From sequence record MW384823.1: 64,000 nt of DNA. The stretch is one strand, 5' to 3'. The stretch's first letter is position 1, and each line of letters opens with the position of its first letter. Below the pieces are notes generated by a model. The model searched no databases and was not told the DNA's origin. It worked only from the letters and a program-made list of their open reading frames with translations. The translations under genes were made by a program, and so were the position numbers. Positions 4,862 through 25,177 of this stretch are shown one piece after another.

Positions 4862-5914
4862 ATGGCTTTAAGATTAAAATGGGATAACCCCAACGTTGTC
4901 ACCACCAAGACAACGATTTACCGTGGTGATGCGCCGCTTGACAACGCGAACTTGCCTGCACCATTGGTAACGTTGGCCGCTGGGATTACCGAGTGGGTGG
5001 ATAACGACGCAAAGTTCGGTAACACGTACTATTACATCCTCGGCAGCAAAACCGACGTGGATGAAGTGTTGACACCTAACCAGAAGATTCTGGTGGCGGA
5101 CAACCGGGGCATTGGTCCTTCCACACTGATGTTGGGTGATGACAGCTTGGGCTTCTTCGGACAAGTGTTGTCTTCTGACTTTGTGAACTCAACCCACATT
5201 CTTGCCGCTGCCGCGACAACATCGGGTCTGCCGACCGGTACAGTTACACCGACATGGAACAAGTTTATCCGCAAGGGTAAAATCATTTATGTTCCAGATC
5301 GTACGTTCGGCGTGTGTCCTTGGTCATCTATTTATCAAGCGGGCTTGGTGTACGGTGTCGATGCAAACGGACCTGCCGACGCAGTCTTGGCCGGGTTAAC
5401 ACTAACGAACCAGAACCGCATCATCGACTTTAAGGGATACAAATACAAAGTTCGACTGCTGCGTGGCATCACTGACCGTCCATTGACGCTCGACCTGTGG
5501 AATGCTCAAAAAAGCAACCAAGAACAGCTCACGGTAGCTGAGGATAACGAATTCAACGATTTGTTCTATCCGTTGGTGTGGCCAGTGCCACTGAAGTACC
5601 AGCGTCTACCGAACATCTTTGAAGACGCGCCGGACTTGTTCTTGGGCGCGCCGTGGAACTCCTACGACAGCACCACTGCGGGCAACCTGACGTTGACTAA
5701 TCGTATTTGGTGTCAAGAGCGTGCACCTAACGCGAATTCTGCGGCGTCAACCTCCGTCGTGCGTGGGGTGCGTGTTGCAGTGTACGGCGGTACGACGTAT
5801 CCCTATACGGCGGATTACATTTCGGCGATGGCGTACAACGCGGGTAACTTGAGCTGCTTCTGGTTCCCGGTATTAGAGTTGGTTGAAGATACCGCTGTTG
5901 TGGCGAAGAGGTAA
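4862..5914 (+). CDS. virion/tail-associated protein, type B paralog 2
   Basis: 350 aa; MALRLKWDNPN resembles MAFILRWTNPN; RGIGP motif. Confidence 0.7.
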   Translation: MALRLKWDNPNVVTTKTTIYRGDAPLDNANLPAPLVTLAAGITEWVDNDAKFGNTYYYILGSKTDVDEVLTPNQKILVADNRGIGPSTLMLGDDSLGFFGQVLSSDFVNSTHILAAAATTSGLPTGTVTPTWNKFIRKGKIIYVPDRTFGVCPWSSIYQAGLVYGVDANGPADAVLAGLTLTNQNRIIDFKGYKYKVRLLRGITDRPLTLDLWNAQKSNQEQLTVAEDNEFNDLFYPLVWPVPLKYQRLPNIFEDAPDLFLGAPWNSYDSTTAGNLTLTNRIWCQERAPNANSAASTSVVRGVRVAVYGGTTYPYTADYISAMAYNAGNLSCFWFPVLELVEDTAVVAKR

Positions 5915-5920
5915 ACAAAA

Positions 5921-6805
5921 ATGGGTGTTAAAATCAGTTGGGATAGCCAAGCGGGTAAAGGGTTGGATGCGGTCGAAGTGTATCGTAGCAAAACCAAGAT
6001 TGACCCGCAGAATCCGGGTACGCCATTGGCGACGCTCGATCCGAGCCTGACGTCGTATGAAGATTTCACGGCGGTCAACAAAAACCTTTACTACTACTGT
6101 CTGGCAGCGAAGAAAGGGTCTGAACGGTCTTTTGGTACCAATCAGTTGACCGCGTATTTCTCGGAGACCGGGCCGGGTAACGCCACCCTTGCGCGGGGAA
6201 GTTGGAACGCAGGCTTTATGGATCGTGTGCCGAGTGCTTCGTTTATTACCGGAAACGACTTGGCCGCAAAACTGACGGGCCTGGTTTACACTGGTAACCC
6301 CGGACAACCGGCTAACTGGTTCAAGTTTGCGTACAAAGGGAAGATTCTGTTCTTCCCAGATGTCGCACTGTTCACCGCCTCGTGGAGCCGTTTCTACGAC
6401 GCAGGCATGGTGTTCGGTACCGATGATTTTGGGAAAACGCCGTCGGGGGTACCGGGTTCGGTTAACCAGAAACGTATCGTGGAAATCAACGGGTTGCAAT
6501 ACATCGCACGTTTGGCCAAGCTCTCTGACATCGACTTGGGTAAATACCTGACGGTGCAAGATGATACCATCGCCAGCGAATACCGTTCGACGTTAACCCG
6601 TATGCTGCGCGCGACGGTTGAAACACAAGCGGGTGCGTTACGTCGTTTCGGTGACATGACGTCGTTACCACTCATGTTGGGCCAACATCTATATTCGGCA
6701 ACACAGGCAGCGTTTGCGCAAGCGGCAGCACCGGCGACGTTAGGCGTGACGGCTATTACCACCGCCGTATCCACTGCCATTGTGCTTGAGCTGATCATGC
6801 CATAA
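5921..6805 (+). CDS. virion/tail-associated protein, type C paralog 2
   Basis: 294 aa; MGVKISWDSQAGKGL; WFKFAYKGKILFFP; ends LELIMP. Confidence 0.7.
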   Translation: MGVKISWDSQAGKGLDAVEVYRSKTKIDPQNPGTPLATLDPSLTSYEDFTAVNKNLYYYCLAAKKGSERSFGTNQLTAYFSETGPGNATLARGSWNAGFMDRVPSASFITGNDLAAKLTGLVYTGNPGQPANWFKFAYKGKILFFPDVALFTASWSRFYDAGMVFGTDDFGKTPSGVPGSVNQKRIVEINGLQYIARLAKLSDIDLGKYLTVQDDTIASEYRSTLTRMLRATVETQAGALRRFGDMTSLPLMLGQHLYSATQAAFAQAAAPATLGVTAITTAVSTAIVLELIMP

Positions 6806-6817
6806 CGGGGAAAGCCC

Positions 6818-8239
6818 ATGGGTTTCTACAACGGTACTGCACTGGAGTTATTGTGCAAACAAGTCGTCATTGATAACCCTGACATGGCGGGACTTATCTC
6901 GCCAGATTCTGTCGTTATACACGGGCCGGTTTCGGCCCGTAATTTTGGGGGTCGTAATACACTCGCGAATTTCGTGGGTGTACCCGGTAAAGGGTTAGCC
7001 GGTAAAATCGACCTCTATTACGACCGTATCAACCTCCTGAGTTTTACGAACCAAAAGTATCTTCCGGTCTCTGTTGCAGGCGACGCGGTAACATTAGAAG
7101 ATGCGATACCGGACATTAACGACGCGCTCGGGCTTAACTTGATGGCGGATGATTTCACTTCACCAAAGACGGTGTTGTCGGGCGGTATCAGTCCCACAAA
7201 TCTCTCCTTTGCCATCAAGAACACCTCGCCCCTCTACACCGGCAGCCTAAACGTGAGTTGGACAAGGAAACCGGTTGGTGTCTATCCAAATTCCGGACCG
7301 GGGCCGCAAGAACTGCGTATCGGTAACGAAGATTTGGGTTACTTTGGTATTGTCTCAGCTATCGATATGCCTAACGGTACACAAATCGCAAACGGTGTGG
7401 TGGCGGGCACGACCATTACCCCACCGGCGAGCGGCGGGACAACCGTAGGCTGGATGAAGTTCTTTTACAAAGGCAAAATCGTCTTTATCCCCAAAACGAA
7501 CATGGCGGGCGTAACGTGGAATGACTACTACAAGGCGGGTTCGCTCTACAGTCAAGACGACCCGAACTACCTTGTTAACCCCGGCACCGATAAAGTTGTT
7601 GTTCCGCAAGACAAGGTGTTTTCATACACCGACACCAAAAACCGGACATTCTATTTTCACCACCGTCTCCCACGCGGCTCCGATGTCATTGATCAAAAAA
7701 TTGGTTCGAATCTTCTGACCTTTGGGGAAGATTACGCATTGGTTTCACGACTCAATGGGGGTGAGTGGGGAACAGAGCCCGGTATCGCATTGTTCGGTAA
7801 CTATTGGATGTCGCAACACCGTATACCGGGAAACGATGCATGGTACATCATATTCAACTTCCGCGGTAGCGGTTTCATGGGTATGGATAAAACGTCAAAA
7901 TACAATTACGTCCCGGTATTGGAACTGGTAGACCCAAGCCAAGCGTTAATAGGCGTGGCTGACTTTACGGTACAATACACGATGCCGAATGGGCCTGTAT
8001 TTGCCGTGGCGGAACCGGCTGTAAATGACTTGGTTCCGATTGCACCGATCACGACGGCTGAGTTGCTTCACACGCCGCCTGCGGTGTCCGTTGAAAGCAC
8101 GGAGAGTATTGTCCCGATTGTACCTGCCCCTACCGACTCGATACGCTTCACGCCTGCGGTAGCCACGGCGACAATCCGTACACCAAATTCGAAATTCCCT
8201 CTCGATGAAGCAGACGGTGAATTGGATACCTTTAACTGA
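6818..8239 (+). CDS. virion/tail-associated protein, type A paralog 3
   Basis: 473 aa; same architecture; ends DGELDTFN. Confidence 0.7.
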   Translation: MGFYNGTALELLCKQVVIDNPDMAGLISPDSVVIHGPVSARNFGGRNTLANFVGVPGKGLAGKIDLYYDRINLLSFTNQKYLPVSVAGDAVTLEDAIPDINDALGLNLMADDFTSPKTVLSGGISPTNLSFAIKNTSPLYTGSLNVSWTRKPVGVYPNSGPGPQELRIGNEDLGYFGIVSAIDMPNGTQIANGVVAGTTITPPASGGTTVGWMKFFYKGKIVFIPKTNMAGVTWNDYYKAGSLYSQDDPNYLVNPGTDKVVVPQDKVFSYTDTKNRTFYFHHRLPRGSDVIDQKIGSNLLTFGEDYALVSRLNGGEWGTEPGIALFGNYWMSQHRIPGNDAWYIIFNFRGSGFMGMDKTSKYNYVPVLELVDPSQALIGVADFTVQYTMPNGPVFAVAEPAVNDLVPIAPITTAELLHTPPAVSVESTESIVPIVPAPTDSIRFTPAVATATIRTPNSKFPLDEADGELDTFN

Positions 8240-11985: not shown

Positions 11986-12696
11986 TCAGGCGTTTAACAG
12001 TGGAATCTGCGTAATCGGCTGACTTAACGGCTGCGGCTGCCATGTGAGCGTTACAGCGTTAAATGCACGCTTGATATTCCGGTAACGCGCATTGACACAC
12101 ACCGCGTGCTTTACATCCCAACGTTCGTGCTCGGGAATCGCGTTTTCAATCTGTTCACGGAAGAACAGGTAGTTGCGATTGTAGTTCAGCGTGACATCCG
12201 ATATCGACGGATAACTGTATACATGCGGGTCATCGTTCTTATCGGCATAAGACGGCCAGCCGAAGTTCTTCACCGCTTCGTAGAACGAGTTGGCAAGGAA
12301 GGAATCGACCTTCATCATTTCCATAATCCGCAAGAACATCAAGTCCGCAAACGGCTTATCCGTTGCCCGCGACAGATTGCCTGCCGGGGTATCCGGGTAC
12401 GGAACCGGCGACGGGGCTTTCTGATACAGCAGGTCGTGGATGCACGCGGCGGCGGCCCATGGGCCATCAGGATGCAGAATAGGCTGCAAGGCGGCCGGGA
12501 TACTTGCCAAGTCTGTCACGAACCCCGCGGGAGCGGTAACATACATCAGCGTATCGGGATGGATACCCGACCGGTGTACCATGTCATCCAATCCGACGTG
12601 GTCACGGTACAGTGCGCGTAACGTGAACGGTACCCGAAAGTCTTCTGTCAGAATGAACCACTGCTTGTCCAGCACTTTATACTTCAACTCGTTCAT
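11986..12696 (-). CDS. DUF1353-domain protein
   Basis: PAGFVTDLASIP, AAACIHDLLY and ADLMF motifs typical of DUF1353. Confidence 0.8.
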   Translation of the reverse strand: MNELKYKVLDKQWFILTEDFRVPFTLRALYRDHVGLDDMVHRSGIHPDTLMYVTAPAGFVTDLASIPAALQPILHPDGPWAAAACIHDLLYQKAPSPVPYPDTPAGNLSRATDKPFADLMFLRIMEMMKVDSFLANSFYEAVKNFGWPSYADKNDDPHVYSYPSISDVTLNYNRNYLFFREQIENAIPEHERWDVKHAVCVNARYRNIKRAFNAVTLTWQPQPLSQPITQIPLLNA

Positions 12697-12828: not shown

Positions 12829-13428
12829 TTATTTAGAACATACGCCTACCTTGATAGCGTAGTCGCCCATTTCACGGTAGACGCGGTCATACCAACCGTA
12901 AGTGAACTCTTCGTTCTGCACACGCTTCTCGGAAATCTCGGTGTAGTACGACACCTGATGCGAGGTCAGTGCGAACATCAGACGGTTGAAGCCATCCAGA
13001 CCACGGGCTTTCAGGAAGCCTTCCAGTGCAGTCATGGTGGCCGGGCCGATACCGCCATCAGCATCGATGTCGGCGTACAGTTTACCCTGACGGTTCAGGA
13101 CGTTCAGGATGCGCTGGAGAGACTTGATGCAGTTAGCACGACCGGCGTTGATACCGAAGTCGAACATACGGTCAGCCAAGAGCGGATTCCATGCGAGAAT
13201 ACGGTCAAGGCGCATACGGTCCCACCATCCTTTCTTGTAGATGTCAAGAGCCATCTGACGCGTCAGGTTACGCATGTCACCGGTGTACCCGTTTTCACGC
13301 GCGGTTGCTTGAGTGATGCCGAAGTTGGTTGGGCCACCCAAATCGTTTGGGTTGTTAACATAACCGGCTTCAATGTTAACTTTGGCCGCGATGATACCTT
13401 CCATACTCCAACGGTCTACAGCTGTCAT
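12829..13428 (-). CDS. endolysin, glycoside hydrolase family 108 with C-terminal peptidoglycan-binding domain
   Basis: EAGYVNNPNDLGGPTNFGIT, FDFGINAG, LQRILN...DGGIGPAT, F.YGW; start MTAVD after GAGG SD. Confidence 0.9.
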   Translation of the reverse strand: MTAVDRWSMEGIIAAKVNIEAGYVNNPNDLGGPTNFGITQATARENGYTGDMRNLTRQMALDIYKKGWWDRMRLDRILAWNPLLADRMFDFGINAGRANCIKSLQRILNVLNRQGKLYADIDADGGIGPATMTALEGFLKARGLDGFNRLMFALTSHQVSYYTEISEKRVQNEEFTYGWYDRVYREMGDYAIKVGVCSK

Positions 13429-13471
13429 AACGTTTCCTCTAATAAAGAACAACAGTCATAACAACCGTAAG

Positions 13472-13512
13472 AAAAAAAGAAAAGCGACCCACCCCCGAAG
13501 GAGTGGGTACGG
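13472..13512 (-). terminator. intrinsic terminator closing the radical SAM operon
   Basis: ACCCACTCC-ttcg-GGGGTGGGT plus T run on the minus strand, immediately after the 13514 stop. Confidence 0.75.
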
Positions 13513-13513
13513 C

Positions 13514-14170
13514 TTAGGCTACACCATTATCCGCAGCAAGCTGCTTGATTGCAGTGAAGTCTTTTTGTTCCGTGAGGATACGGATGCGTTGTTTCAGCAC
13601 GGACATGACCATGTGCAGGTCGTTGTCACGCGCGATGATTTCCGCATAGAGGGCTTTGACGTCCTCCACCGTCCACGGCTCGATAGGCTCGTTGTTCAGC
13701 GTCATCCAGTACATCGGGTCAACCCCGGACTGCATGTAGCTTTGCATCGAAGCGCGCGATTTCTCGTCGGCTTGGAACGTCTTGTCACGGAAGGTAATCG
13801 GTGCAAACCGTTCCGCGTTATACTTGTCGTTCAGCTTCGGATAAATCGCATTGACTTCCTGATAGAGATAGTTTTCCGTCGAGGTCAGCGCGGTACGTAC
13901 TTGGTCTAAATCAATCTCCAGCACGTTCGCGATGAAGTCTTTGGTCTTCTTCATCAGGAATTCAATTTCGACCGGAGACAGGTCGAAGCCTTTGAGTTTC
14001 TCGCGGGCTTTCTTGTCGCTCATACCGTTAATCAGATGGTAGTGCAGCAGCAGGCAGAACCCAATGCGGTTTTCCATCTGGTCTTGGTATTCTTCCACGT
14101 AGTTACCGTAGCGGTCGATACGTGTGCCCCGTTCGAAATAGCGGGCTTTTATTTCGTCGTTACTAAGCAT
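13514..14170 (-). CDS. DUF4376-like protein (family associated with tail-fibre genes)
   Basis: C-terminal ITFRDKTFQADEKSR...YWMTLNNE...VKALYAEI resembles DUF4376. Confidence 0.6.
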   Translation of the reverse strand: MLSNDEIKARYFERGTRIDRYGNYVEEYQDQMENRIGFCLLLHYHLINGMSDKKAREKLKGFDLSPVEIEFLMKKTKDFIANVLEIDLDQVRTALTSTENYLYQEVNAIYPKLNDKYNAERFAPITFRDKTFQADEKSRASMQSYMQSGVDPMYWMTLNNEPIEPWTVEDVKALYAEIIARDNDLHMVMSVLKQRIRILTEQKDFTAIKQLAADNGVA

Positions 14171-14706
14171 CCGGATTCTCCTGCAATCCCAAGGTCAACC
14201 AGCAGACCGAAGTCAATGAACTGGAAATCATTTTCCAACTCTTCACCCCAGAGCAGTTTGGCCTCTTCTGCTTCGTCACCCATCTCTTCCAGCGTCTTAC
14301 GTGCCACTTCGAACTCGTGGTAGAACGCATCGGTCAGGTGGGTACCGCGCAGAGCACGGATGGTCACACCAGGGAAGTTCAGGGCCAGTCCCACGACGTT
14401 AGTTGGGTCGGCATCACCGGTAGACCGGCGCAGCACCTGCAACTTGTGTTTCGGGAACGCCACCACACGTTCTTCGAAACCGGGATTACGCTTCTCGATT
14501 TCGACAACAGACTGGTGGTCATCTTCCACGCCCTGTAAAGGCAGGATGACGTTCAGGCCATAACGGTTCAACAGACGAATGGTGTCATCGTTGAAATCTT
14601 CACCCGGCACGATCGCATGGATGTTGTACAGCTTGTGTTTGCGAAGAAACGCATCAACAAGGTGAACGTTACGCCGAGTAAAATTGTGAATCAGCAATGA
14701 CTTCAT
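14149..14706 (-). CDS. hypothetical protein in the radical SAM operon
   Basis: 185 aa; overlaps both neighbours. Confidence 0.65.
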   Translation of the reverse strand: MKSLLIHNFTRRNVHLVDAFLRKHKLYNIHAIVPGEDFNDDTIRLLNRYGLNVILPLQGVEDDHQSVVEIEKRNPGFEERVVAFPKHKLQVLRRSTGDADPTNVVGLALNFPGVTIRALRGTHLTDAFYHEFEVARKTLEEMGDEAEEAKLLWGEELENDFQFIDFGLLVDLGIAGESGCLVTTK

Positions 14707-16015
14707 TCGAGGCTCCGAGTTCTAATTTAAGTTTGTCTGCCTGCATACGTTCACGTACACAGCTCGCACAGTAGCACATGGACTTATCGTGCAGGTCTGC
14801 GACATTCGTGGTACCGGTTTTCTGATACCAGTATTCGGACACCAACAGTTTCGCGGTCGTCCAACCACACTGGCGACGCTCAGCGTGGTACTCTTTACGC
14901 GCTTCCAGCTCACCGTCACCGTTCTCGTAAGACGCGGCCGCACAGCTACCGCACGAGTGTTTCATCGGGCAGCCTAAGCAGGTAGACGGGTAGTTGGTGT
15001 ACTGCGTCTGGATTTCGTTCAGGAGCTTGTGACCGTCAATGTTCACAATCTCACGGCCACGCAGTTCTGCTACAGCCGAACGGGTGGTCACGGTTGACAT
15101 GAAGCGGTTACAGCCGTAAATCTTACGGTCGAAGCCGAGACAGGTCATGTGGGTCAGCGTACCGCAGTAAGGACGTACGCGGTCTGGGTGCAGACGGGTT
15201 GCTTCATCGTCCAGCAACTTCTGACGCCAGTCCGGGTCCCATGTCGCCATGAAGTCCAGCCCATCAGGAATGATGTGGGTCAGGATGTTACGCGGGGACT
15301 TGTGGTAGCCGTTGTCGACCCAGTAATCGATAACGTCCATCATCTGGTTCGCAATGCCCAGAGACATATCACGCGTCAGGATATCTTCATACGTGACGTT
15401 ACCGGAGATGGTACCACCGCCTGTTTCTTTAATCAGGTGAATCATGCTCTCGCCGTAACGAGGCAGGGTCTCACCAGTAAAGGTGGCTTTGATACCGAGT
15501 TCTGCAATACCGACAGATTTCAGGTATTGGTAGCCGCGCATCGCTTGCTCGTACGAGCCTTCACGCGAGGTGGTGAAGATACGATAGCGGTCGTGCACTT
15601 CTGGCAGACCATCGATGGACACACCAATCGACAGACGGTCTTTCCAGCGTTCAATGATTTCTTTGCTGATGGGACGGTCGAACAAGGTGCCGTTGGTAGA
15701 AATAGAGAATACGTACTGACGGTTGTCGCGCGCCGCTAATTCTTCCGCTGTCTCAAAGACGGCTTTCAGAATCTTCGGCTGCATAAACGGCTCACCCCCG
15801 ATGATGTCGATAATGATTTCGGCATCTTCGATGTGACGGTCGCGGTCAAAACACGCATGAATAAAATCGACAGCGTCATCCACTTTGTTGTTACGCGGAT
15901 ATTTACGCTCGTAGCAATACGAACAGTCGAGATTACAAGACAGGTTAGTTACCACCTGATACGTGAGTGTGGGGCGCTGTTTACGCGTCTGCGATGTAGA
16001 TCGTTCTTCGCTCAT
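14669..16015 (-). CDS. radical SAM/SPASM-domain peptide maturase
   Basis: CNLDCSYC (CxxxCxxC), GGEP, STNG, SIDG; C-terminal C...GC...CLGCPMKHSCGSC...C SPASM-like Cys set. Confidence 0.9.
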   Translation of the reverse strand: MSEERSTSQTRKQRPTLTYQVVTNLSCNLDCSYCYERKYPRNNKVDDAVDFIHACFDRDRHIEDAEIIIDIIGGEPFMQPKILKAVFETAEELAARDNRQYVFSISTNGTLFDRPISKEIIERWKDRLSIGVSIDGLPEVHDRYRIFTTSREGSYEQAMRGYQYLKSVGIAELGIKATFTGETLPRYGESMIHLIKETGGGTISGNVTYEDILTRDMSLGIANQMMDVIDYWVDNGYHKSPRNILTHIIPDGLDFMATWDPDWRQKLLDDEATRLHPDRVRPYCGTLTHMTCLGFDRKIYGCNRFMSTVTTRSAVAELRGREIVNIDGHKLLNEIQTQYTNYPSTCLGCPMKHSCGSCAAASYENGDGELEARKEYHAERRQCGWTTAKLLVSEYWYQKTGTTNVADLHDKSMCYCASCVRERMQADKLKLELGASNEVIADSQFYSA

Positions 16016-16905
16016 TTGATTACCTCATTGCGATGTTTGCGAGCGTGGATCGTGCGATTGATGTAACGGTAGGCGTCTTGCCCAATGACTTTCGCCAGCA
16101 TGTTACAGCCGCTATCGATTTCCATCTCGACATCCATCGTGTAGCCGATAGACGCATCGGAGTCCAGACGAACCAGACCGCTGCACGCGTTGCACGACTG
16201 CTCAAAGAACTTGCTGATGGAGAACCCGGTTGAGCCATTGTTCATGACATTCAAGCGTTCAATCTGGTCTTCCATCTTGTTGTAACCGAACATGAAGTTC
16301 ATCACCAAATCTTGGTTCAGAGGTTTCTTCATGCGGTTGTCCAACAGCAGCGTCATGTCTTTGAAGCCGTAGTGGTAGAGTGCGCGGTGTAAGTCCAGCA
16401 GGTCAGTGTGCCAATATTTATCAGCCAACTGCTCACGAGTCACCACGGCCCACGTATGGACGTTGTTCAGCGCAGCCATCACTTCGAAGGCTTCGAATGC
16501 GCCATCTTCAACGACACGCCAGAGCGGACGTTCGCTCTTTTTGTATCCATCGAACGACACACAGATACGGTTAAACTGTTGCAGCATCGGGAGGTGCTCC
16601 AGACGCATTTTCAGGCCGTTCGTGTACAGCTCGTGAGTGAGATGCGGATAACGGGCTTTGACTTCGGCCAGCAACGGCTCAATCTTACGGGTTGCCATCA
16701 ACGGCTCACCGCCCGTCCAGTTCATCCCTTGTAAAGTCGGGTACTTCTCCAGTTGTTCAAACAGCGCTTCACGCTGAATTTCCCGACCAACATCTTTTGT
16801 GTCCATGTAATACGCTCCGCCGCAGAAACTACAATCCAAATTACACTTGGACGTCGTCACTATCGACAGCTCGGTAGGGGGACGTATTTGTGGTGCATCG
16901 GTCAT
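16012..16905 (-). CDS. second radical SAM enzyme with short C-terminus
   Basis: CNLDCSFC, TGGEP, YTNG, SFDG; only CNAC...C downstream; 4-nt overlap with the next gene. Confidence 0.85.
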   Translation of the reverse strand: MTDAPQIRPPTELSIVTTSKCNLDCSFCGGAYYMDTKDVGREIQREALFEQLEKYPTLQGMNWTGGEPLMATRKIEPLLAEVKARYPHLTHELYTNGLKMRLEHLPMLQQFNRICVSFDGYKKSERPLWRVVEDGAFEAFEVMAALNNVHTWAVVTREQLADKYWHTDLLDLHRALYHYGFKDMTLLLDNRMKKPLNQDLVMNFMFGYNKMEDQIERLNVMNNGSTGFSISKFFEQSCNACSGLVRLDSDASIGYTMDVEMEIDSGCNMLAKVIGQDAYRYINRTIHARKHRNEVIK

Positions 16906-16923
16906 TGCAGATTGCTCCAGTTT

Positions 16924-17802
16924 TTAATAGATCGCGAAAAGGGGATCGTCCTCAAACTTCGCGCCCACATCCAGCAAGAAGTCGGAGTGGTAGGCTTCGA
17001 GAATCTGATTCAGAATCGCATGACGGTCGTTAACCCGCTTGAGGTCATCGAGGGTCACGATTCGCGACTTGATGTTTGAAACTGCCTTTTCTTCGTCAGC
17101 TGTCAGGGAAACCTTCGTCATAAGGAAACTTACCAGCTTGCTCAGGTCAGCCTCGGTGCCCGGCGCTTCACCGTAACGCCACTGAACCAAGAACTGCATC
17201 CACGGTTTGCGGATACGGCGACTGATTTCGTGTGGGTCGGTAATCGCTTCGAACTGCTCATCTACCGCATTCCAGCGGAACTTGTAGCTGTAGGCCAGCA
17301 AGTCAGCCAGACAATGGATACCGAGCGTTTCATAACCTACGATGTGGTGGTATTTTTCCACACCTTTATACTCTTCGGTGCCGGTTGGTACTAAGGTGTA
17401 CCAGAACGGATTGGAAGACGGATAGTCCCAGCTCCATTCGCGACGAACCATGGGAATGACGTCCAAATCCGCAAACGGCGTGAAGATCATTTCCAAATCC
17501 ATCGAGTGGTTCAGGACTGCATCAGTAAAGAAATACTTACCGTCAATCAGTCGGCCACTGGAGTTCAGCTCGCTTTCATTAAACTTCACATGCTGAACGG
17601 TGTGCTTACCGATGGAGTAGGTATTCTCTTCGGTGTACTGCTTACGAACAATGTCCCGCCCACGTACCTTAGGCCATTCGCCTGGCAGCATCGAGATAAG
17701 GCGTACTTCGTCCGCGATGTGTGCTTTCACACTGTCGTACGACGAAATGTGTAACGGGAAATTTTGCGTCGTGCGGTACGCCAAATGGAGGTCGTTCTTC
17801 AT
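16924..17802 (-). CDS. hypothetical protein between precursor peptides and radical SAM genes
   Basis: 292 aa open frame, colinear with the operon. Confidence 0.75.
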   Translation of the reverse strand: MKNDLHLAYRTTQNFPLHISSYDSVKAHIADEVRLISMLPGEWPKVRGRDIVRKQYTEENTYSIGKHTVQHVKFNESELNSSGRLIDGKYFFTDAVLNHSMDLEMIFTPFADLDVIPMVRREWSWDYPSSNPFWYTLVPTGTEEYKGVEKYHHIVGYETLGIHCLADLLAYSYKFRWNAVDEQFEAITDPHEISRRIRKPWMQFLVQWRYGEAPGTEADLSKLVSFLMTKVSLTADEEKAVSNIKSRIVTLDDLKRVNDRHAILNQILEAYHSDFLLDVGAKFEDDPLFAIY

Positions 17803-17820
17803 GGTTTCTTTATCCTTACT

Positions 17821-18030
17821 TTATCGGTTACCCGCGCCGTAACTGCACCCACCACTGCACGACCAGCTACAGCTACCGTTGCAGTTATAATGCGAGAGTG
17901 GAAGCCCAGCAAGGTTGTTGGTCGAACTGACCGTGCCGCGTGTGGCGATATAGTTATTGGCCTGTGCGGTCGTGATGTAGCCCTCGACGTTCTGCACCCG
18001 ATCGCGAATGTTTTTCAATGAGATTGCCAT
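17821..18030 (-). CDS. putative RiPP precursor 3 (short core, 4 Cys)
   Basis: 49-aa leader MAISLKNIRDRV..VE; core CNGSCSWSCSGGCSYGAGNR; GAGG SD. Confidence 0.8.
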   Translation of the reverse strand: MAISLKNIRDRVQNVEGYITTAQANNYIATRGTVSSTNNLAGLPLSHYNCNGSCSWSCSGGCSYGAGNR

Positions 18031-18051
18031 AGGTCCTCACTCGATAGATTT

Positions 18052-18444
18052 CTATCGACTGCCTGAACAGCCAGAGCATCCCGTACAACTTGAACTACAG
18101 GAACCGGAACAGTTACCGGAGCATGTACCCGAACAACCGGAGCACCCGCCCGAACACGAACCAGAACATCCTGAGCACCCACTGGTACACCCAGCAGTAC
18201 AGCTCGACGAACAAGAGGAACCGCAGCCCCCTGATGCCGAACCGGAACAGCCACCTGAACAGCTAGAACAACCCCAGCTACAGGTTCCGCCGCAATCGTA
18301 ATGAACACGTCCTTGGCCGCCGAATAAGTCGACGTTATTGGTTGCCTTGCCACGAATGTAGGTTTGAACCCCACCTTCCGTTTTTAAGGCGTTCGCTTCG
18401 ATCACCGCAATGCGATCCGCGAGGTTTCGTAAGTTGATAGCCAT
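18052..18444 (-). CDS. putative RiPP precursor 2 (Cxxx/Cxx-repeat core, 20 Cys)
   Basis: 50-aa leader MAINLRNLADRI..IE; 80-aa C/S/G/T core; GGAG SD. Confidence 0.85.
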   Translation of the reverse strand: MAINLRNLADRIAVIEANALKTEGGVQTYIRGKATNNVDLFGGQGRVHYDCGGTCSWGCSSCSGGCSGSASGGCGSSCSSSCTAGCTSGCSGCSGSCSGGCSGCSGTCSGNCSGSCSSSCTGCSGCSGSR

Positions 18445-18453
18445 TGTTGCTCC

Positions 18454-18843
18454 CTACTGTGGACCAGAGCACGCAGAACAACCGGTGCAGCTAGAAGAAC
18501 ATGACCCAGCGCAACCGCCGCCACACTTACCGCTGCACGATGACGCACAGGTACCTGAGCAACCCGAACAACCCGAACACCCACCACCGCAGTTAGAAGA
18601 ACAGCTACCCACGCACGTAGAAGTACAGGTTCCTGCGCAGCTGGTACAGCTTGCAGAACACCCGTTAGAACACGACCAGCTACAACTGCCGCCACAATCC
18701 AGACGGGAGGGAGACCACCCACTGAACGAGTCCGCAGCGTTGTAAGCTTTCGATGCTACCTGCCCATCTACACGAGGCCCGGTAGCATAGTTTGCTTCCA
18801 CATTGTTAACGCGGTCGCGTATGTTTTTCATTGAAATCGCCAT
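18454..18843 (-). CDS. putative RiPP precursor 1 (Cxxx/Cxx-repeat core, 21 Cys)
   Basis: 49-aa leader MAISMKNIRDRV..VE; 80-aa Cys-periodic core; AAGG SD. Confidence 0.85.
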   Translation of the reverse strand: MAISMKNIRDRVNNVEANYATGPRVDGQVASKAYNAADSFSGWSPSRLDCGGSCSWSCSNGCSASCTSCAGTCTSTCVGSCSSNCGGGCSGCSGCSGTCASSCSGKCGGGCAGSCSSSCTGCSACSGPQ

Positions 18844-18860
18844 ACGTTTCCTTTGTCAAT

Positions 18861-18898
18861 AAAAAAATGAGGACGCTGCCATAATGACAGCACCTCAT
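18861..18898 (-). terminator. imperfect intrinsic terminator upstream of the precursor genes
   Basis: ATGAGGtGCTGTC-attat-GGCAGCgtCCTCAT plus T run on the minus strand. Confidence 0.55.
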
Positions 18899-18908
18899 GT
18901 AATAAGTG

Positions 18909-20108
18909 TTATCGTGAACCCGCTTCGGCCTGTACGTCGTCGCGAGAAGTCAGGCTGCTATTGACGTGTACCGCCGCCTGAACCACACCACCGTACTGCT
19001 TGTGGAGATAGTTCGGGTGTGGGTTGTCCGCGTTAACGTGGTTCTGGAGATTCTGCGACAGGGTGTTGATGGAGTTCTGCAACCCAGCAACTTGCTGTTT
19101 CAGTGCATTAAGCTGACCAGAGAGATCCTGAATCTGCTGCTGCGTATCGGAACCGGCGGATTCCAAATCACTGATGCGCTGCTTGAGCCCATTGATGACT
19201 TGGTTCTGGTCATTGACCATCTTCTGGAGTTGCAACACCAGAGAGTTGAGGTCAGCCTGTTGTAAGGCCGCCTTCTGGTAGTTCAACGCCACCGAGTTCA
19301 GTTGGTCGTTCCACGAACCGAGCGCACTGACCACAGCATCGATGCGCGCGCCGAGTGCGGTGTCTGCGGCTTTCAGATTACCAATGTCGGCTAAGACCGC
19401 GTTAATCGCCGTTTGCACCGTTTGAATCAACGCACGGATTTCGGTTTCCGTCAGACCGTTTGCCTGATGGATGTCCAGCGCATGGACGTTACCTTTGGCA
19501 TCGATGTGCGATTGCAGAGCCGCCATCATCTGGGTTTGCATGTCAGACATGGCTGCCAGAATCTGTTGGAGCTGCACTTCGTTACCGGAGTTAATCGCGT
19601 CAGTCATCAGCGCCAGTTGCGTGATGATGTATTCGAAACCGAACAGGTCACCGAGGTCTTTAAATGCCGGAGCAGACGCAAAGGTATCCGGGACATTACG
19701 CAAATCCGCGAAGTCAACTTTACGGTCTTCAAGGTTGGCATCAGCCAACGCCTGTTTAATCGCAGAGATAACCGCCGATTGTGGGCCACCAACCGCCTGT
19801 GCAAGACAGACGATATCGGTTGGGATAGCCGGGTTAGTGACGACCACACCCATACAGATTTCGCGGTTCTTCGCAAGCTTCATGTACGCCGGATGGATGT
19901 AAATCAGCTCGTAGTCGGTACCGCGTTTATAAATGGTGTTGGGTTGATTGGCAGGCCGCATACGGAACGTGTCCGCAAAGAACGGCCCTGCTGGGAAAGC
20001 AAACGCACGGTTGACCTTCCCCCCACCTAACACAACCGGGACATTGACCGCGTTACTGGACGCAGCCCCTGTCAGGTCAAGTGGGTATTGAAATAGAATA
20101 TCTGGCAT
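18909..20108 (-). CDS. short tail-fibre-like virion protein with long coiled coil
   Basis: N-domain (GPFF...RGTDYE) shared with the three giant proteins; heptad-rich C-half; HVNADNPH motif. Confidence 0.6.
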   Translation of the reverse strand: MPDILFQYPLDLTGAASSNAVNVPVVLGGGKVNRAFAFPAGPFFADTFRMRPANQPNTIYKRGTDYELIYIHPAYMKLAKNREICMGVVVTNPAIPTDIVCLAQAVGGPQSAVISAIKQALADANLEDRKVDFADLRNVPDTFASAPAFKDLGDLFGFEYIITQLALMTDAINSGNEVQLQQILAAMSDMQTQMMAALQSHIDAKGNVHALDIHQANGLTETEIRALIQTVQTAINAVLADIGNLKAADTALGARIDAVVSALGSWNDQLNSVALNYQKAALQQADLNSLVLQLQKMVNDQNQVINGLKQRISDLESAGSDTQQQIQDLSGQLNALKQQVAGLQNSINTLSQNLQNHVNADNPHPNYLHKQYGGVVQAAVHVNSSLTSRDDVQAEAGSR

Positions 20109-20155
20109 GGCCAAACTCCCTTAGTGAGACGTCCTTGTCTCGACGTGTTAGATGG

Positions 20156-23100
20156 TTACGGCAACTTAGGCATAAGATTGACCGTCAGTTTCGATGGGGT
20201 GACCGTTCCACCGTAATAGTTGACCCCGTTGCCGATGTACAACGCGTTATCCGCAATCATCACCGGTATCGGTTGACGGAAGACGACATCCCCATGAACA
20301 ATCGGGAAGTAGTCATCGATTGAAACCCCCGCGGGCATCGCAACCTTATAGACGTCCAACACCCCACCGGTAATACGGGCAGTGGAACTGTCCACGTTTG
20401 TTGCTGCACGAATCGCCACAGTGGCAGCGTCGGAAGTGTAGAACACCGACGATGAGCCGTTGTCCACGTTTGCGATGCTGAACGCGGCGAAAGCCGAGGC
20501 TTGCCCGCCAGTAATGCCGCTAAACACAAACGTGTTCTTGACCCCCACATCTGCGGACAGGGTAATCTCGGACAATGCAGACGCGAAAGTACCAGAAACC
20601 GCAAGGTTGGCGTTAGTACACACGATGGTACCCGCGCCCAAGGTATAACCCGGTTTGAGTTTGATTTTCACCGTCGGGGTCGATGGGGTGACCTCAACAA
20701 TCATTCTCCACGCAATCGAGTTAATGGCTGACATCCCCGGAATACCCACAGAATACGCATTGTCCACATCCGAAGCCTGACTAACGTTGGCCCCTTTCAT
20801 CGTAAACTTTTTGTAGTCTTTAGGTAAGCTGGAGGTAAGCGCATCGCGTAGCAGCTCGATAGGCACCTTGTGGGTTCGTGCGGCAAAGATACCGCCGATT
20901 TGCGCGACATCCAAGTAGCCATCCCCGGTAGCCGCAGGTGCAGCAAGCGGCTGTTTGCGGAGCAGCCCCAGACGGGACAGGCGCGCTTCACTGTCCACGT
21001 TCACATCGTGACTGTAAACGATTTCAGCGTGCTCAGTCAGTTGTTTCAATTCACCCAGACGTTTCACTTTCGTGAACTCCGATGAAAGGATTCGCTGACT
21101 GTCGGTAACCACCGTCCCGATAAACAACCGACTATTGGTGTCTGGCATTTTCTGCGTCAACAGCTGGTATTCCGGTTTGCCGTTCACCACCGCCGCGTGC
21201 ATGTAGAACGTCCGGTTCTGATACGCACCGGGGAACAACGTCTTGAGGTTCTGGTTGTAGGCATCCAACGTGTAATAGTCGGAACCAAACCGTAAGCTCT
21301 CAGACTCGGTGATGTACAGCTCCCAGCCTTCTGCCGTTTTCACCCCAGCCACAATCTCATACGGCCGTGCAGTCGGTACCCAACCCGGCACGTTTGCGAT
21401 GTAGTCCTCAGGAGGCGCTGCCGGACCTGCAAGGTAGGCAGGCGAGACGTAGCTTTGGTTCGTGCGAGCAAGTTTATTACCGACAATTGCCAACTGGGTT
21501 GGGTTGTAGTAATACGCTGAACTCAGCATCGTTGCACCGTTGTTGACGAGCTTCGACCCGTTTAAGGTGAACTTCATCTCAAAGTGCTTTGACCCCGCAC
21601 CCCCAACCACGTTGTACTGATACACGTTCGGCAAGTGCAGGAAACCTGTGCCGTCCCCTTTCTCGTAAAAGATAGGTTGTGTGTAACGCTGGGTGTGGTA
21701 ATGGTAATACGTGATACTCATCGCCGTGATTGACGGTTCGGCAATGTTGACGCCGTACACCATGTCAACCGTGGTGATGGGGAACGTTACCGTTGAGCCT
21801 GTCACGGTAGGGTAAATCTGGAACAGGTAGTAGTCGACGAAACGGCTACTGTTGCGGTCACTCTTCACCGCCACTTGCACCAACCAAATCGGCTTGGCAT
21901 CTTTCGGACGAATCGCCCACACAGAGAACTGAGGGTCAGCTCCTGCATTGATATATTCGTTCGCGTAAGCGTTAGCCGAACCCGACGGTGCTTGTGACTT
22001 GATGGTGCTTAGGAGCGTGTTCCAGTCACTCTGGCTAATTGTCAGGACGTCAGCAGTTGGGCTGTCACCCACGGCTTGGTAGTTCTGACTGCCGGGTGCT
22101 GTCCAGTAGGCACCTTGCGGTTTCCCGTTTTGCAGACTACCGGATGCACACCACGTCATGTTCCCCAGCTTGTAATACTTCGCGAGGTCAAACGCACGCC
22201 GCACGTTGGACGGGCCTAAGCCGCCAAAGTCCGGTGAGTAACGGGTGTCCGGGTCAGTCTCAACATACACCGCACTGGCCTCAGTAATTGGTGCCAGCAG
22301 GTATGCGTTGTTGCCGAGGTATACCGCGCCACTGTAACCCACTTTCAGTACCGACCCCACCCCGCCATTGAACACCCACGCATCTACCTGATTCATGCCG
22401 TAGTTAGAATGGGCTTCCAGATGGTCAAACAACGAACGGCTATTATCCCCTAACACACAACGGCTAATCCCGGTCTGGTTCGCCGCGTCACCGGGGTCAA
22501 AGTACGTCCAGAAATACGGGCTATTGTCAATCGGATAAACGTGGGTACGGTTGTTGGCAAAACCATACGCCCATTTCGCTTGATAGCCTTTGGTGCGCAT
22601 TTCTTCGCCGGTAGCCAGATATACCCCGTCGACATCAATCTTCAGCGGGAAGATCTCAGGGTTCTCAAGCGTAACCGCGAACGCATCCATGTCCACCACG
22701 AACGATGTCGGCCACACGGTAAATGGATACGACCCATCAGCATTCGCCAGATAAATCGTACCGTTTACACCGACGCGCAACGTCGCGTTTTTCAGGGCAA
22801 CACCGGCATGGGTTTGTGGGCCATGCGCAATGTTACGCGTTTGCCACTTCGCCAAGCCCGCCGCCGTTACCGTTGACAGACCGTTCGGCACAACAGTTGT
22901 CGAGCCGGGGTCAATCGGTTGACGCAAGTTAACGAAGACGCCTTGGCGACTGGTACCGCCAGTCAGCGCCACAGACGCGAACACTATTCCCCCGTTGGCG
23001 TTTACCGTACCGACCAACATAAAGGTGCGGTAATAGTTGTTAGTGACTTCCATGCGTAGGATATACACGCGGTCTTTGTAGACCACAACATGATCCGTCA

Positions 23101-25177
23101 ACTGGTTCGGTGAATAGTTAAACGTAGAGCCAGAACCGGGTAAATCGGTTGGGAAGGTCGTCTGCCAAACACGCAGGTGTTTCTTCTGGTTAAGCGTCCC
23201 GTCAAACATGATGGTGTAGTATTTGTTGTCTGTCCCCAAACAGACCATCGCGTCTTCACCACACACGACGATTGCCACCAGTTTCACACCGGGGAACGCA
23301 CTCATGCCCGCCGGTTGATAAACGTAGGAGGTTTGCTGGCGTTTAACCATCAGTCCCGCCGTGTCAATCTGAGCATACGAGTAATAGATGTAGTCCGTAT
23401 TCGGTAAGCCGTCGTTGGCGTTCCGTAAGGCATACACCGTGTCCGCTTCCTGCTTAATCACCCCTAAAGACTGTGGTTGATTAAACCGTTTGGCAAAACC
23501 TGCGTAGTTACCCACAGCCGGGATGGGCAGATAGCCGGGGTTACCGTAAGCAGCACCACCGGTCGTCCACGACGGCATCAGGCCATCCAGCACCCCTTTG
23601 TACTCGTTCAGACGCTGCTGTACATTGTAGCCCTGCTTTGACGTCACCACCTTATTCGTGGTGTTATCAATTGCATCCCACAGCTGCAACAGACCCGCGT
23701 CTGTATCGGACGCCGTGGGCACGCCAGTCAGGTCAGCGAAAGTGTGCGTGTGGTTTGCCAGTGACTTGTTTGCCAGCACTGCACGGATCGCATTGGTCAG
23801 TGGTTTCTCAGCAGGGGCGGTGTTGTTGATGTTACCCACACCCAAATCGGTTGCCGTCAGGGTCAGTGACTGCTTTGTGCCGTCATCAATAAACTTCTTC
23901 CCGTTGATGGTGTACGTGTTGTCCACGTAATCATCCAGCGTCTTTTTCAGGACGTTAACAGCGTACTGGGAAATCGCAGTACCGGAAGAAATATTTGCAG
24001 ACAGGTTGGTAATGGCAAACAGACCCGGCACTTTGTCAGTGGCGGTCGGGAGTTGCGCATTCATGGTCAGGGGAGACGACTGCTTCGCCGTACCGAACAC
24101 CTTGATGGTGTCGGTGGGCGAAAAATACGCATTGCCCGGCAACAGTTTTACTTCGGACAGGTACAGCGATACCATATCCGGTGTGACCAAGTATGCCCCG
24201 TTAAAGATAGGTGCCACGGCACCGTTGAGTACATACGCGGTGTTCAGGCCGGAACCCAACTCCACACCCACGCCCCGTTCGTTGCTGTCTGCATCGGCAG
24301 TGATGTTAATAGCACGGGTAGTGGTAATAAGGAACTTGTCACCTTGCAGGGTGATGACGTGACTGGAGTCGGCGGTACGGAACGTCAGGGCACCGTTGTT
24401 CAGCACCTTGAGGCGACCACGCAGTTCGCCGAGTACCACCGGCATCAGGGTATCGATGTGGGTTTGCTGAATACCGTTCGCTTTCATGATAGCGACTAAC
24501 TCGTCCAGCGTCTTACCGAACGCCTTCGTTGAGTCAATTGCCTTGGTCAATACCTTTAATGCCCCAATCTCATCTGCCGTGTATTGGTGTGCGTTCTTGA
24601 TGCGGTGGTGGCTGTACAGGTTGTCATCAAAAATCTTTTTACCGTTGGCGAAAATCAAATCGGTGACTTCGGTGTACGCCGCATCCATTTCCCCTGCACG
24701 CTTAATCAGACCCTGGCGAATGTCATCCAGTGCTTTGACCACTTCGTCACGGAGCAGGGCTTCGTCCAGGTTAGCAGGTGGGTCAATTGCAGGAATCACC
24801 GGCGCATAACGCATCAGTTCAGACCAATCGGTGTTACGCGGGTCTTTGATGTCCTCTTTTACTAAGAACTTACCAATCTCGGTTTGTGGCACGCGATATT
24901 CACGGCCAACGGAATAGATTGTGTAGTCAACGGAGGTGTCCCCGTTAATCAACATAATCCCGCCGTAGATTTGGTCTTTCATTGCGACAGCGGCTTCTTT
25001 GTAATAGTAGCCGAGGTAGTAATCCAGACCCTCAATGAGCTTTACGCCTGCGCTGTTTTTCAGCTCAAGCCCGGTACGGAAGAACGGCCCCTCAGGAGGG
25101 ATGACCACATTGTATTTGTTCGGATACGTGGTCGTCAGTAGCGTACCGGTAAATTTGGCTACGTTCGTGCTCGCCAT
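20156..25177 (-). CDS. giant tail-fibre-like virion protein (1673 aa)
   Basis: Shared GPFF N-domain; G+.N+.NT...KP...HTH module; Gly/Thr/aromatic beta-rich body. Confidence 0.7.
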   Translation of the reverse strand: MASTNVAKFTGTLLTTTYPNKYNVVIPPEGPFFRTGLELKNSAGVKLIEGLDYYLGYYYKEAAVAMKDQIYGGIMLINGDTSVDYTIYSVGREYRVPQTEIGKFLVKEDIKDPRNTDWSELMRYAPVIPAIDPPANLDEALLRDEVVKALDDIRQGLIKRAGEMDAAYTEVTDLIFANGKKIFDDNLYSHHRIKNAHQYTADEIGALKVLTKAIDSTKAFGKTLDELVAIMKANGIQQTHIDTLMPVVLGELRGRLKVLNNGALTFRTADSSHVITLQGDKFLITTTRAINITADADSNERGVGVELGSGLNTAYVLNGAVAPIFNGAYLVTPDMVSLYLSEVKLLPGNAYFSPTDTIKVFGTAKQSSPLTMNAQLPTATDKVPGLFAITNLSANISSGTAISQYAVNVLKKTLDDYVDNTYTINGKKFIDDGTKQSLTLTATDLGVGNINNTAPAEKPLTNAIRAVLANKSLANHTHTFADLTGVPTASDTDAGLLQLWDAIDNTTNKVVTSKQGYNVQQRLNEYKGVLDGLMPSWTTGGAAYGNPGYLPIPAVGNYAGFAKRFNQPQSLGVIKQEADTVYALRNANDGLPNTDYIYYSYAQIDTAGLMVKRQQTSYVYQPAGMSAFPGVKLVAIVVCGEDAMVCLGTDNKYYTIMFDGTLNQKKHLRVWQTTFPTDLPGSGSTFNYSPNQLTDHVVVYKDRVYILRMEVTNNYYRTFMLVGTVNANGGIVFASVALTGGTSRQGVFVNLRQPIDPGSTTVVPNGLSTVTAAGLAKWQTRNIAHGPQTHAGVALKNATLRVGVNGTIYLANADGSYPFTVWPTSFVVDMDAFAVTLENPEIFPLKIDVDGVYLATGEEMRTKGYQAKWAYGFANNRTHVYPIDNSPYFWTYFDPGDAANQTGISRCVLGDNSRSLFDHLEAHSNYGMNQVDAWVFNGGVGSVLKVGYSGAVYLGNNAYLLAPITEASAVYVETDPDTRYSPDFGGLGPSNVRRAFDLAKYYKLGNMTWCASGSLQNGKPQGAYWTAPGSQNYQAVGDSPTADVLTISQSDWNTLLSTIKSQAPSGSANAYANEYINAGADPQFSVWAIRPKDAKPIWLVQVAVKSDRNSSRFVDYYLFQIYPTVTGSTVTFPITTVDMVYGVNIAEPSITAMSITYYHYHTQRYTQPIFYEKGDGTGFLHLPNVYQYNVVGGAGSKHFEMKFTLNGSKLVNNGATMLSSAYYYNPTQLAIVGNKLARTNQSYVSPAYLAGPAAPPEDYIANVPGWVPTARPYEIVAGVKTAEGWELYITESESLRFGSDYYTLDAYNQNLKTLFPGAYQNRTFYMHAAVVNGKPEYQLLTQKMPDTNSRLFIGTVVTDSQRILSSEFTKVKRLGELKQLTEHAEIVYSHDVNVDSEARLSRLGLLRKQPLAAPAATGDGYLDVAQIGGIFAARTHKVPIELLRDALTSSLPKDYKKFTMKGANVSQASDVDNAYSVGIPGMSAINSIAWRMIVEVTPSTPTVKIKLKPGYTLGAGTIVCTNANLAVSGTFASALSEITLSADVGVKNTFVFSGITGGQASAFAAFSIANVDNGSSSVFYTSDAATVAIRAATNVDSSTARITGGVLDVYKVAMPAGVSIDDYFPIVHGDVVFRQPIPVMIADNALYIGNGVNYYGGTVTPSKLTVNLMPKLP

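Follow-up and report, generated by a model that had tools for sequence, protein, structure and literature searches.

Two overlapping radical SAM genes of an Erwinia jumbo phage as a candidate two-enzyme maturation set for cysteine-repeat tail-fibre proteins

Radical SAM (S-adenosylmethionine) chemistry of the type that acts on peptides that are synthesized ribosomally and modified post-translationally (RiPPs) is known from small secreted peptides and a few enzymes. Several described or curated systems come close to the genes considered here. One is the CXXX-repeat maturase family TIGR04115, for which no published chemistry turned up in our literature search. Another is the His-Xaa-Ser system, which consists of the SPASM radical SAM enzyme HxsB, the small radical SAM enzyme HxsC, HxsD and the repeat protein HxsA; to our knowledge, its chemistry has not been described either. 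CteB (SCIFF/thermocellin) and SkfB are thioether synthases, the latter being a twitch enzyme. In PapB, the substrate cysteine is bound to auxiliary cluster 1 (PMC12373016). In this study, we examined a pair of adjacent radical SAM genes in the Erwinia jumbo phage pEa_SNUABM_43 (MW384823; genus Machinavirus, 242 kb), which lie within a stretch of 64,000 nucleotides of that record (hereafter the window, whose coordinates are those of the record minus 124000). Both genes have carried the GenBank label 'putative radical SAM superfamily protein 1/2' since the sequencing of phage SPN3US, and our literature search found nothing on their SPN3US counterparts, gp163 and gp164; of the genes in this neighbourhood, the SPN3US papers mention only gp168.

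We slightly favour the view that the gene pair supplies both catalytic parts of a single maturation machine, which together with a helper protein would act on the CXXX-repeat tails of fibre or fibre-associated proteins. This view is supported by the anatomy of the genes, the conservation of catalytic motifs, the co-occurrence of both enzymes, natural fusions, family placement and the tail-fibre context.

A first-pass annotation of the window, made by a model from the letters alone, had described two radical SAM open reading frames (ORFs) of 448 and 297 codons joined by a 4-nt overlap. Both ORFs were recovered with the overlap ATGA, together with all motifs named in that annotation (GGEP in both proteins, CNLDCSYC in the large and CNLDCSFC in the small one), and a Shine-Dalgarno-like GAGG is located 8 nt 5' of the ATG of the downstream gene, which encodes the large enzyme. 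Both proteins match Pfam Radical_SAM (PF04055) above its gathering score of 29.5 (large, 56.7 bits; small, 43.8 bits), and the CX3CX2C motif is formed by C27/C31/C34 in the large enzyme and by C21/C25/C28 in the small one. We aligned the large protein of the window with 25 homologues, down to 32% identity. The radical SAM Cys triad and GGE are conserved in this alignment, and the SPASM-like Cys set attributed to the large enzyme holds, with C284, C302, C346, C349, C355, C358 and C383 invariant and C292 nearly so. SPASM proteins were defined here by seven to eight C-terminal cysteines (C..C..CX2CX5CX2-3C..C) that would serve two auxiliary clusters; the Cys pattern and the names given to homologues by the Joint Genome Institute (JGI) place the large protein among them, and no match to a Pfam SPASM model was listed for it at E <= 0.01. 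The additional C-terminal CYCASC (CxCxxC) is also real and, among the 26 aligned sequences, is found only in the jumbo-phage-like clade. The small enzyme, which had been credited with few C-terminal cysteines, has three only: the invariant C238 and C267, and C241, which nearly all homologues have. Its C21, C25, C28 and GGE are invariant in both alignments built for it, one with 24 close homologues and a later one with 31 broader ones that reach down to 16% identity.

Compared with phage Machina, the ratio of nonsynonymous to synonymous substitution rates (dN/dS) was 0.036 for the large and 0.034 for the small enzyme, and both are under strong purifying selection. Using tblastn, we detected both enzymes in the same 62 phage records, and the large one also in five unrelated gut contigs. 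All 62 records belong to SPN3US-like jumbo phages, which infect Erwinia, Salmonella, Escherichia, Cronobacter and Proteus. Because both genes occur in 62 phage records and have such low dN/dS values against phage Machina, a chance arrangement can be excluded. Although PHROGs assigns both enzymes to phrog_1802, BLASTP aligned them at 28% identity across 76 N-terminal residues only, and recent paralogy was rejected on this basis. Together, these data support two distinct and non-redundant radical SAM enzymes that belong to a single cassette for peptide or protein maturation.

The proposal that the large enzyme is a SPASM protein of the thioether-forming type was strengthened by comparison with curated families. 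Its best NCBIfam matches were TIGR04115 (126.4 bits, cut-off 350) and PapB NF047865 (125.4 bits, cut-off 340), followed by HxsB (83.6 bits, cut-off 370) and the anaerobic sulfatase maturase (anSME) model TIGR03942 (58.8 bits, cut-off 349). The small enzyme matched generic radical SAM cores only, the top ones being PapB (41 bits) and HxsC (33 bits, cut-off 267.9); its score for TIGR03942 was 25.2 bits. Membership of either protein in TIGR04115, PapB, Hxs or anSME was rejected, as all scores are below the cut-offs. By its sequence, the large enzyme is related to the thioether-type SPASM maturases while being a member of none, and is a sister of both the TIGR04115 family and PapB.

For the small enzyme, an AlphaFold2 (AF2) model with a predicted local distance difference test (pLDDT) score of 88.8 aligned over nearly its full length with peptide-modifying SPASM and twitch enzymes, including CteB (Z 18.8; 276 of the 297 residues covered), TigE (Z 17.6), ChlB (Z 17.2), anSME (Z 17.1) and SkfB (Z 14.1). 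A profile search of the Protein Data Bank with the same protein yielded the same set and, in addition, the epimerase YydG/EpeE. Twitch or partial SPASM enzymes are defined by a C-terminal beta-hairpin and helix domain in which three to four cysteines ligate one auxiliary Fe-S cluster; the small enzyme has three conserved cysteines and its whole model aligns with SPASM/twitch enzymes, the binding of a cluster being a prediction.

To see how the two enzymes are distributed beyond the SPN3US-like phages, we traced distant relatives of the large enzyme (31-39% identity) to their contigs. A recurrent set of genes was found in unrelated phages and prophages, among them several metagenomic phages: one for a fibre protein with CXXX repeats at its end, one for a helper (about 250 residues) and one each for a small and a large radical SAM enzyme. 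In a lambda-like prophage of Deferribacter abyssi (locus L006), a 302-residue protein ending in ...YYRCSDCSWTCSSSCTGSC... repeats is followed by a 250-residue protein, a 263-residue small and a 385-residue large radical SAM enzyme. In a P2-like prophage of Campylobacter pinnipediorum (L007), it is the tail-fibre protein itself (PF12571) that ends in GCNGCSGSCSGSCSSGC..., and the genes that follow encode a 250-residue protein, the large enzyme, the small enzyme and a DUF1353 protein. Comparable sets occur in loci L009/L010, L015, L018, L205, L206, L207 and L208, and the genes of the pair overlap by 1 to 4 nt in L007, L009, L206 and L207. Instead of one enzyme being missing from most loci, both are kept, separate or fused, in 12 of the 13 independent lineages. 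A related-locus search with a subset of the small-enzyme alignment returned only unrelated phage radical SAM genes, except for the Campylobacter locus, and a contig scan with the large-enzyme alignment, which gave mostly generic SPASM enzymes, was not used.

Some of these loci contain additional radical SAM genes. In the lambda-like contig L207 (4925-8105), three consecutive ones, encoding a divergent large-type enzyme (362 residues), a small enzyme (319 residues) and a large enzyme (381 residues), are located 3' of the CXXX-tailed fibre gene. The 213-kb contig L009 encodes a small-type enzyme of 472 residues with a C-terminal extension of about 200 residues (6583-8001), and upstream of it a 71-residue radical SAM fragment (5083-5298), which suggests a remnant of duplication.

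The candidate substrates in the window are encoded by Cys-rich genes on the minus strand. For the region 18052-18843, the GenBank record of pEa_SNUABM_43 instead has plus-strand ORFs (18123-18266 and 18434-18745), and the annotation of phage Machina has the minus-strand Cys-rich genes. Three findings support the minus-strand reading: the genes belong to phrog_6085, unrelated phages have homologous CXXX tails, and dN/dS is lower in the Cys-rich frame (0.048) than in the opposite frame (0.145). Precomputed Pfam matches label the fibre proteins as PF27846, 'tSAM_targ_Cxxx_rpt', a model that postdates the Pfam copy we used. Since the fibre proteins carry this name, the target family has already been recognised by database curators, and, judging by the name of the entry rather than its text, 'tSAM' may refer to the enzyme set described here. 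Tail-fibre proteins or mini-proteins associated with fibres are the likely substrates, and their CXXX repeats would be the part on which the enzymes act.

The conserved helper belongs to the enzyme set. The 292-residue protein of the window is homologous to the 250-residue protein of the Deferribacter prophage (E = 6e-12), and the latter to its 250-residue Campylobacter counterpart (E = 4e-10); adjacency of the helper to the radical SAM pair is conserved in unrelated phages. It has no known domain, and Pfam, NCBIfam and ESM Atlas gave no lead. In both enzymes CX3CX2C begins too early (residue 21 in the small one, residue 27 in the large one) to leave room for an N-terminal recognition domain, and because neither has such a domain, the helper probably holds or presents the substrate.

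A scan of IMG/VR revealed more than 60 loci in which a single radical SAM enzyme of about 445 residues, scoring 430-586 bits for TIGR04115, adjoins a CXXX-repeat protein. As genuine TIGR04115 members adjoin CXXX proteins in more than 60 phage contigs, this type of enzyme and CXXX repeats go together, and maturation of CXXX repeats appears to be common in phages. It also follows from these single-enzyme loci that the classical CXXX-repeat maturase works alone. The clade of the window is a sister branch that gained a second radical SAM enzyme and a helper. Many of the TIGR04115 contigs (L019-L091) came from one large metagenome set; their CXXX-repeat proteins have 100-540 residues and are not accompanied by a second radical SAM enzyme.

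Natural fusions gave further evidence for cooperation. When 1.8 billion representatives were searched with a profile of the small-enzyme alignment, about 30 full-length relatives were identified and, in some proteins, a small-type domain fused ahead of a large-type domain. Together with a word search begun from one fusion, eight small-large fusions from different clusters were obtained (P0143, P0236 (L011), P0302, P0303, P0304, P0310, P0331 and L017), whose neighbours are a CXXX-tailed fibre protein and the helper. All eight retain CX3CX2C and GGEP in the small-type domain, and the C-terminal cysteines of that domain are gone in seven. This suggests that a fused small domain can use the clusters of its partner when tethered, an idea based on the loss of the auxiliary cysteines of the small enzyme only when it is fused.

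If the favoured view is correct, maturation might proceed as follows. The helper would present the Cys-repeat tail, and the 448-residue SPASM enzyme would be the main cross-linker, introducing thioethers repeat by repeat. By analogy with PapB, CteB and TIGR04115, a Cys thiolate of the substrate would be bound to an auxiliary Fe-S cluster and a 5'-deoxyadenosyl radical would take a hydrogen from a nearby carbon, with a thioether as the probable product. The 297-residue enzyme would be a stripped-down radical SAM enzyme of the SPASM/twitch type, itself active, and would subject this substrate to another radical reaction, which would give either a second class or position of cross-link or an epimerisation. 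It would probably work in a physical complex with the large enzyme.

Several observations weigh against this scheme. In the provirus L016, the fibre, helper and large radical SAM genes are present and no small one was detected either in 10.8 kb or in the 42-kb record, although an empty profile-search result shows little; this locus implies that the small enzyme is not universally required. In L205, the genes of the pair are 2.5 kb apart. The phage repeats lack Asp or Glu acceptors such as those used by PapB. Finally, the AF2 model of the natural fusion P0143 (pLDDT 83.7) has a predicted template-modelling score (pTM) of 0.62 and a low-confidence linker (residues 220-260); the orientation of its domains is uncertain, and it argues neither for nor against a fixed interface.

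Two of these observations, the distance in L205 and the pTM of 0.62, also fit an alternative in which the enzymes form no complex and act one after the other, each on its own. The small one might then epimerise and the large one cross-link, the overlap of their genes being operon economy only. The gene order, which varies (the large gene precedes the small one in Campylobacter and L208, and the helper lies between them in L018), and the presence of the radical SAM epimerase EpeE/YydG, which is of similar size, among the matches point in the same direction. However, repeated independent fusions favour physical cooperation, and the loss of auxiliary cysteines is specific to fused small domains. 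We therefore consider independent action unlikely, albeit the strongest competitor, and regard physical partnership of the pair as supported but not proven.

The first-pass annotation had also suggested that the small protein could serve as a partner subunit. Tight gene coupling in many lineages and the natural fusions agree with the partnership itself, whereas the invariance of the catalytic motifs makes a non-catalytic subunit unlikely. As a scaffold, a substrate-recognition subunit or an electron relay for the large enzyme, such a protein might explain why its auxiliary cysteines are gone in most fusions and why L016 does without it. However, a purely structural subunit would be expected to drop the catalytic motifs somewhere, and the SAM-cluster and SAM-binding motifs (CX3CX2C and GGEP) are invariant in all fusions as well as in 32 homologues that reach down to 16% identity, with the low dN/dS of the small enzyme pointing the same way. 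Because these motifs are kept everywhere, the small enzyme is not a dead partner, and a non-catalytic role is improbable.

Another suggestion of that annotation, that the small enzyme acts at a conserved Trp, could not be sustained. In the jumbo phages and in L006, L009, L015, L018, L205 and L206, the substrate cores start with C(S/T)W(S/T)C, and a Cys-Trp or Lys-Trp-type cross-link at the Trp of this CSW motif would fit the finding that five lineages with this start all have a small radical SAM enzyme bearing three C-terminal cysteines, that the sole locus lacking the small gene has a Trp-less substrate, and that the structural matches include SuiB, which cross-links Lys and Trp. However, the cores are Trp-less in Campylobacter and L207, which have complete small enzymes, and in L011 and L017, which have a fused small domain, and Tyr replaces Trp in one L205 substrate. 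As four lineages retain the small enzyme or its domain without the Trp, a Trp-specific role was rejected; sequence comparison thus disfavours a Trp-directed function, to which we give very little probability. Least probable of all is that the Cys repeats are not cross-linked and that the enzymes serve metal or Fe-S binding or an anSME-type formylglycine oxidation, since, despite the close structural match to anSME, the AslB-like names given to some homologues by JGI and the lack of acidic acceptors in the repeats, the TIGR03942 score is far below its cut-off, the closest families are thioether formers and the repeat architecture parallels PapA (CXXXD) and the TIGR04115 targets.

Beyond the favoured view of a catalytic pair, we tentatively propose a more specific one, namely a new radical SAM maturase with two active sites that acts on virion structural proteins instead of secreted peptides and covalently staples Cys-repeat fibre tips, possibly between the chains of a trimer, with a small twitch-like subunit sharing the substrate-binding auxiliary clusters of its SPASM partner. 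If this is true, radical SAM cross-linking would be a general and previously unrecognised means by which phages harden or shape their receptor-binding fibres. The likely substrates here are tail-fibre proteins of very different phage lineages (jumbo, P2-like and lambda-like), and covalent cross-linking of fibres, if it occurs, would bring a new principle to virion assembly and stability, with possible effects on host recognition and on the engineering of robust phage fibres. The pair would also be a natural case of cooperation between two radical SAM enzymes, fused in some instances, that allows the division of labour of a SPASM and a twitch-like enzyme to be dissected. The question is directly testable because an amber-mutant genetic system already exists for SPN3US.

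The radical SAM pair is situated inside a run of minus-strand genes (12829-25177; Table 1), whose order is identical in phages Asesino, SPN3US (gp163-gp168), CR5 and Kwan, and the region 13500-20200 is 100% identical to pEa_SNUABM_43 and 96% identical to phage Machina. The SPN3US protein gp168 is a tail protein resembling phiKZ gp131, a protein of the baseplate periphery (PMC5105663). The start of the gene for the 185-residue protein overlaps the 3' end of the large radical SAM gene by 38 nt (14669-14706), and weak homologues of this protein are encoded directly downstream of the large enzyme in L205 and L206. A DUF4376 gene is also present upstream of the CXXX fibre gene in L207.

Table 1. 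Genes and features around the radical SAM pair (window coordinates)
Feature	Position	Strand	Related entries and remarks
1673-residue protein, SPN3US gp168 homologue	20156..25177	-	
401-residue virion structural protein with coiled coil	18909..20114	-	phrog_2163, SPN3US gp167
129-residue Cys-rich CXXX-repeat protein, likely substrate	18454..18843	-	phrog_6085; dN/dS 0.048
130-residue Cys-rich CXXX-repeat protein, likely substrate	18052..18444	-	phrog_6085
69-residue Cys-rich protein: 49-residue N-terminal part and minimal CNGSCSWSCSGGCS core	17821..18030	-	phrog_6085
292-residue helper protein	16924..17802	-	phrog_8030, SPN3US gp165
Small radical SAM enzyme, 297 residues, SPN3US gp164 homologue	16012..16905	-	
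ATGA stop/start overlap of the small and large radical SAM genes	16012..16015	-	
Large radical SAM/SPASM enzyme, 448 residues, SPN3US gp163 homologue	14669..16015	-	
185-residue protein, possible accessory	14149..14706	-	phrog_7988, SPN3US gp162
218-residue DUF4376 protein; domain linked to tail fibres	13514..14170	-	
Endolysin	12829..13452	-	

Outside this run, the minus strand encodes a 236-residue protein (11986-12696), the phage Kwan homologue of which carries a tail assembly-like annotation. The 236-residue protein shows homology (E = 1.4e-6) to the DUF1353 protein (L007, 10068-10433) encoded directly 3' of the radical SAM pair in the Campylobacter P2-like prophage, and may be part of the same fibre-maturation set. 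In addition, near-identical relatives of the region 14149-18843, with about half of the sampled 31-mers in common, were present in contigs of runs that belong to 12 studies, among them metagenomes of leaf, food, dust and fungus.

Among the known systems, TIGR04115 resembles the large enzyme in being a SPASM-type radical SAM protein with the same Cys layout, and its targets are CXXX repeats of small residues, comparable to the three CXXX-repeat genes of the window (17821-18843); however, its loci have one radical SAM enzyme and no helper of the type seen in the window. PapB, the enzyme of the PapB/PapA (freyrasin) ranthipeptide system, like the proposed phage system, modifies cysteines repeat by repeat through one SPASM enzyme. 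On the other hand, PapA contains CXXXD motifs with Asp as the acceptor, whereas the phage repeats contain neither Asp nor Glu, and PapB acts alone on a small secreted peptide, whereas the likely phage substrate is a virion fibre protein. CteB, which is 15% identical to the small enzyme, has an N-terminal RiPP recognition element (RRE) and a full SPASM domain; both are absent from the small enzyme, which has only two to three C-terminal cysteines. Within the curated library, the His-Xaa-Ser system is the only one that pairs a large SPASM enzyme with a non-SPASM radical SAM enzyme of about 290 residues, a further protein and a tripeptide-repeat substrate; its repeat is HXS where that of the phages is CXXX, and the phage helper has no match to HxsD.

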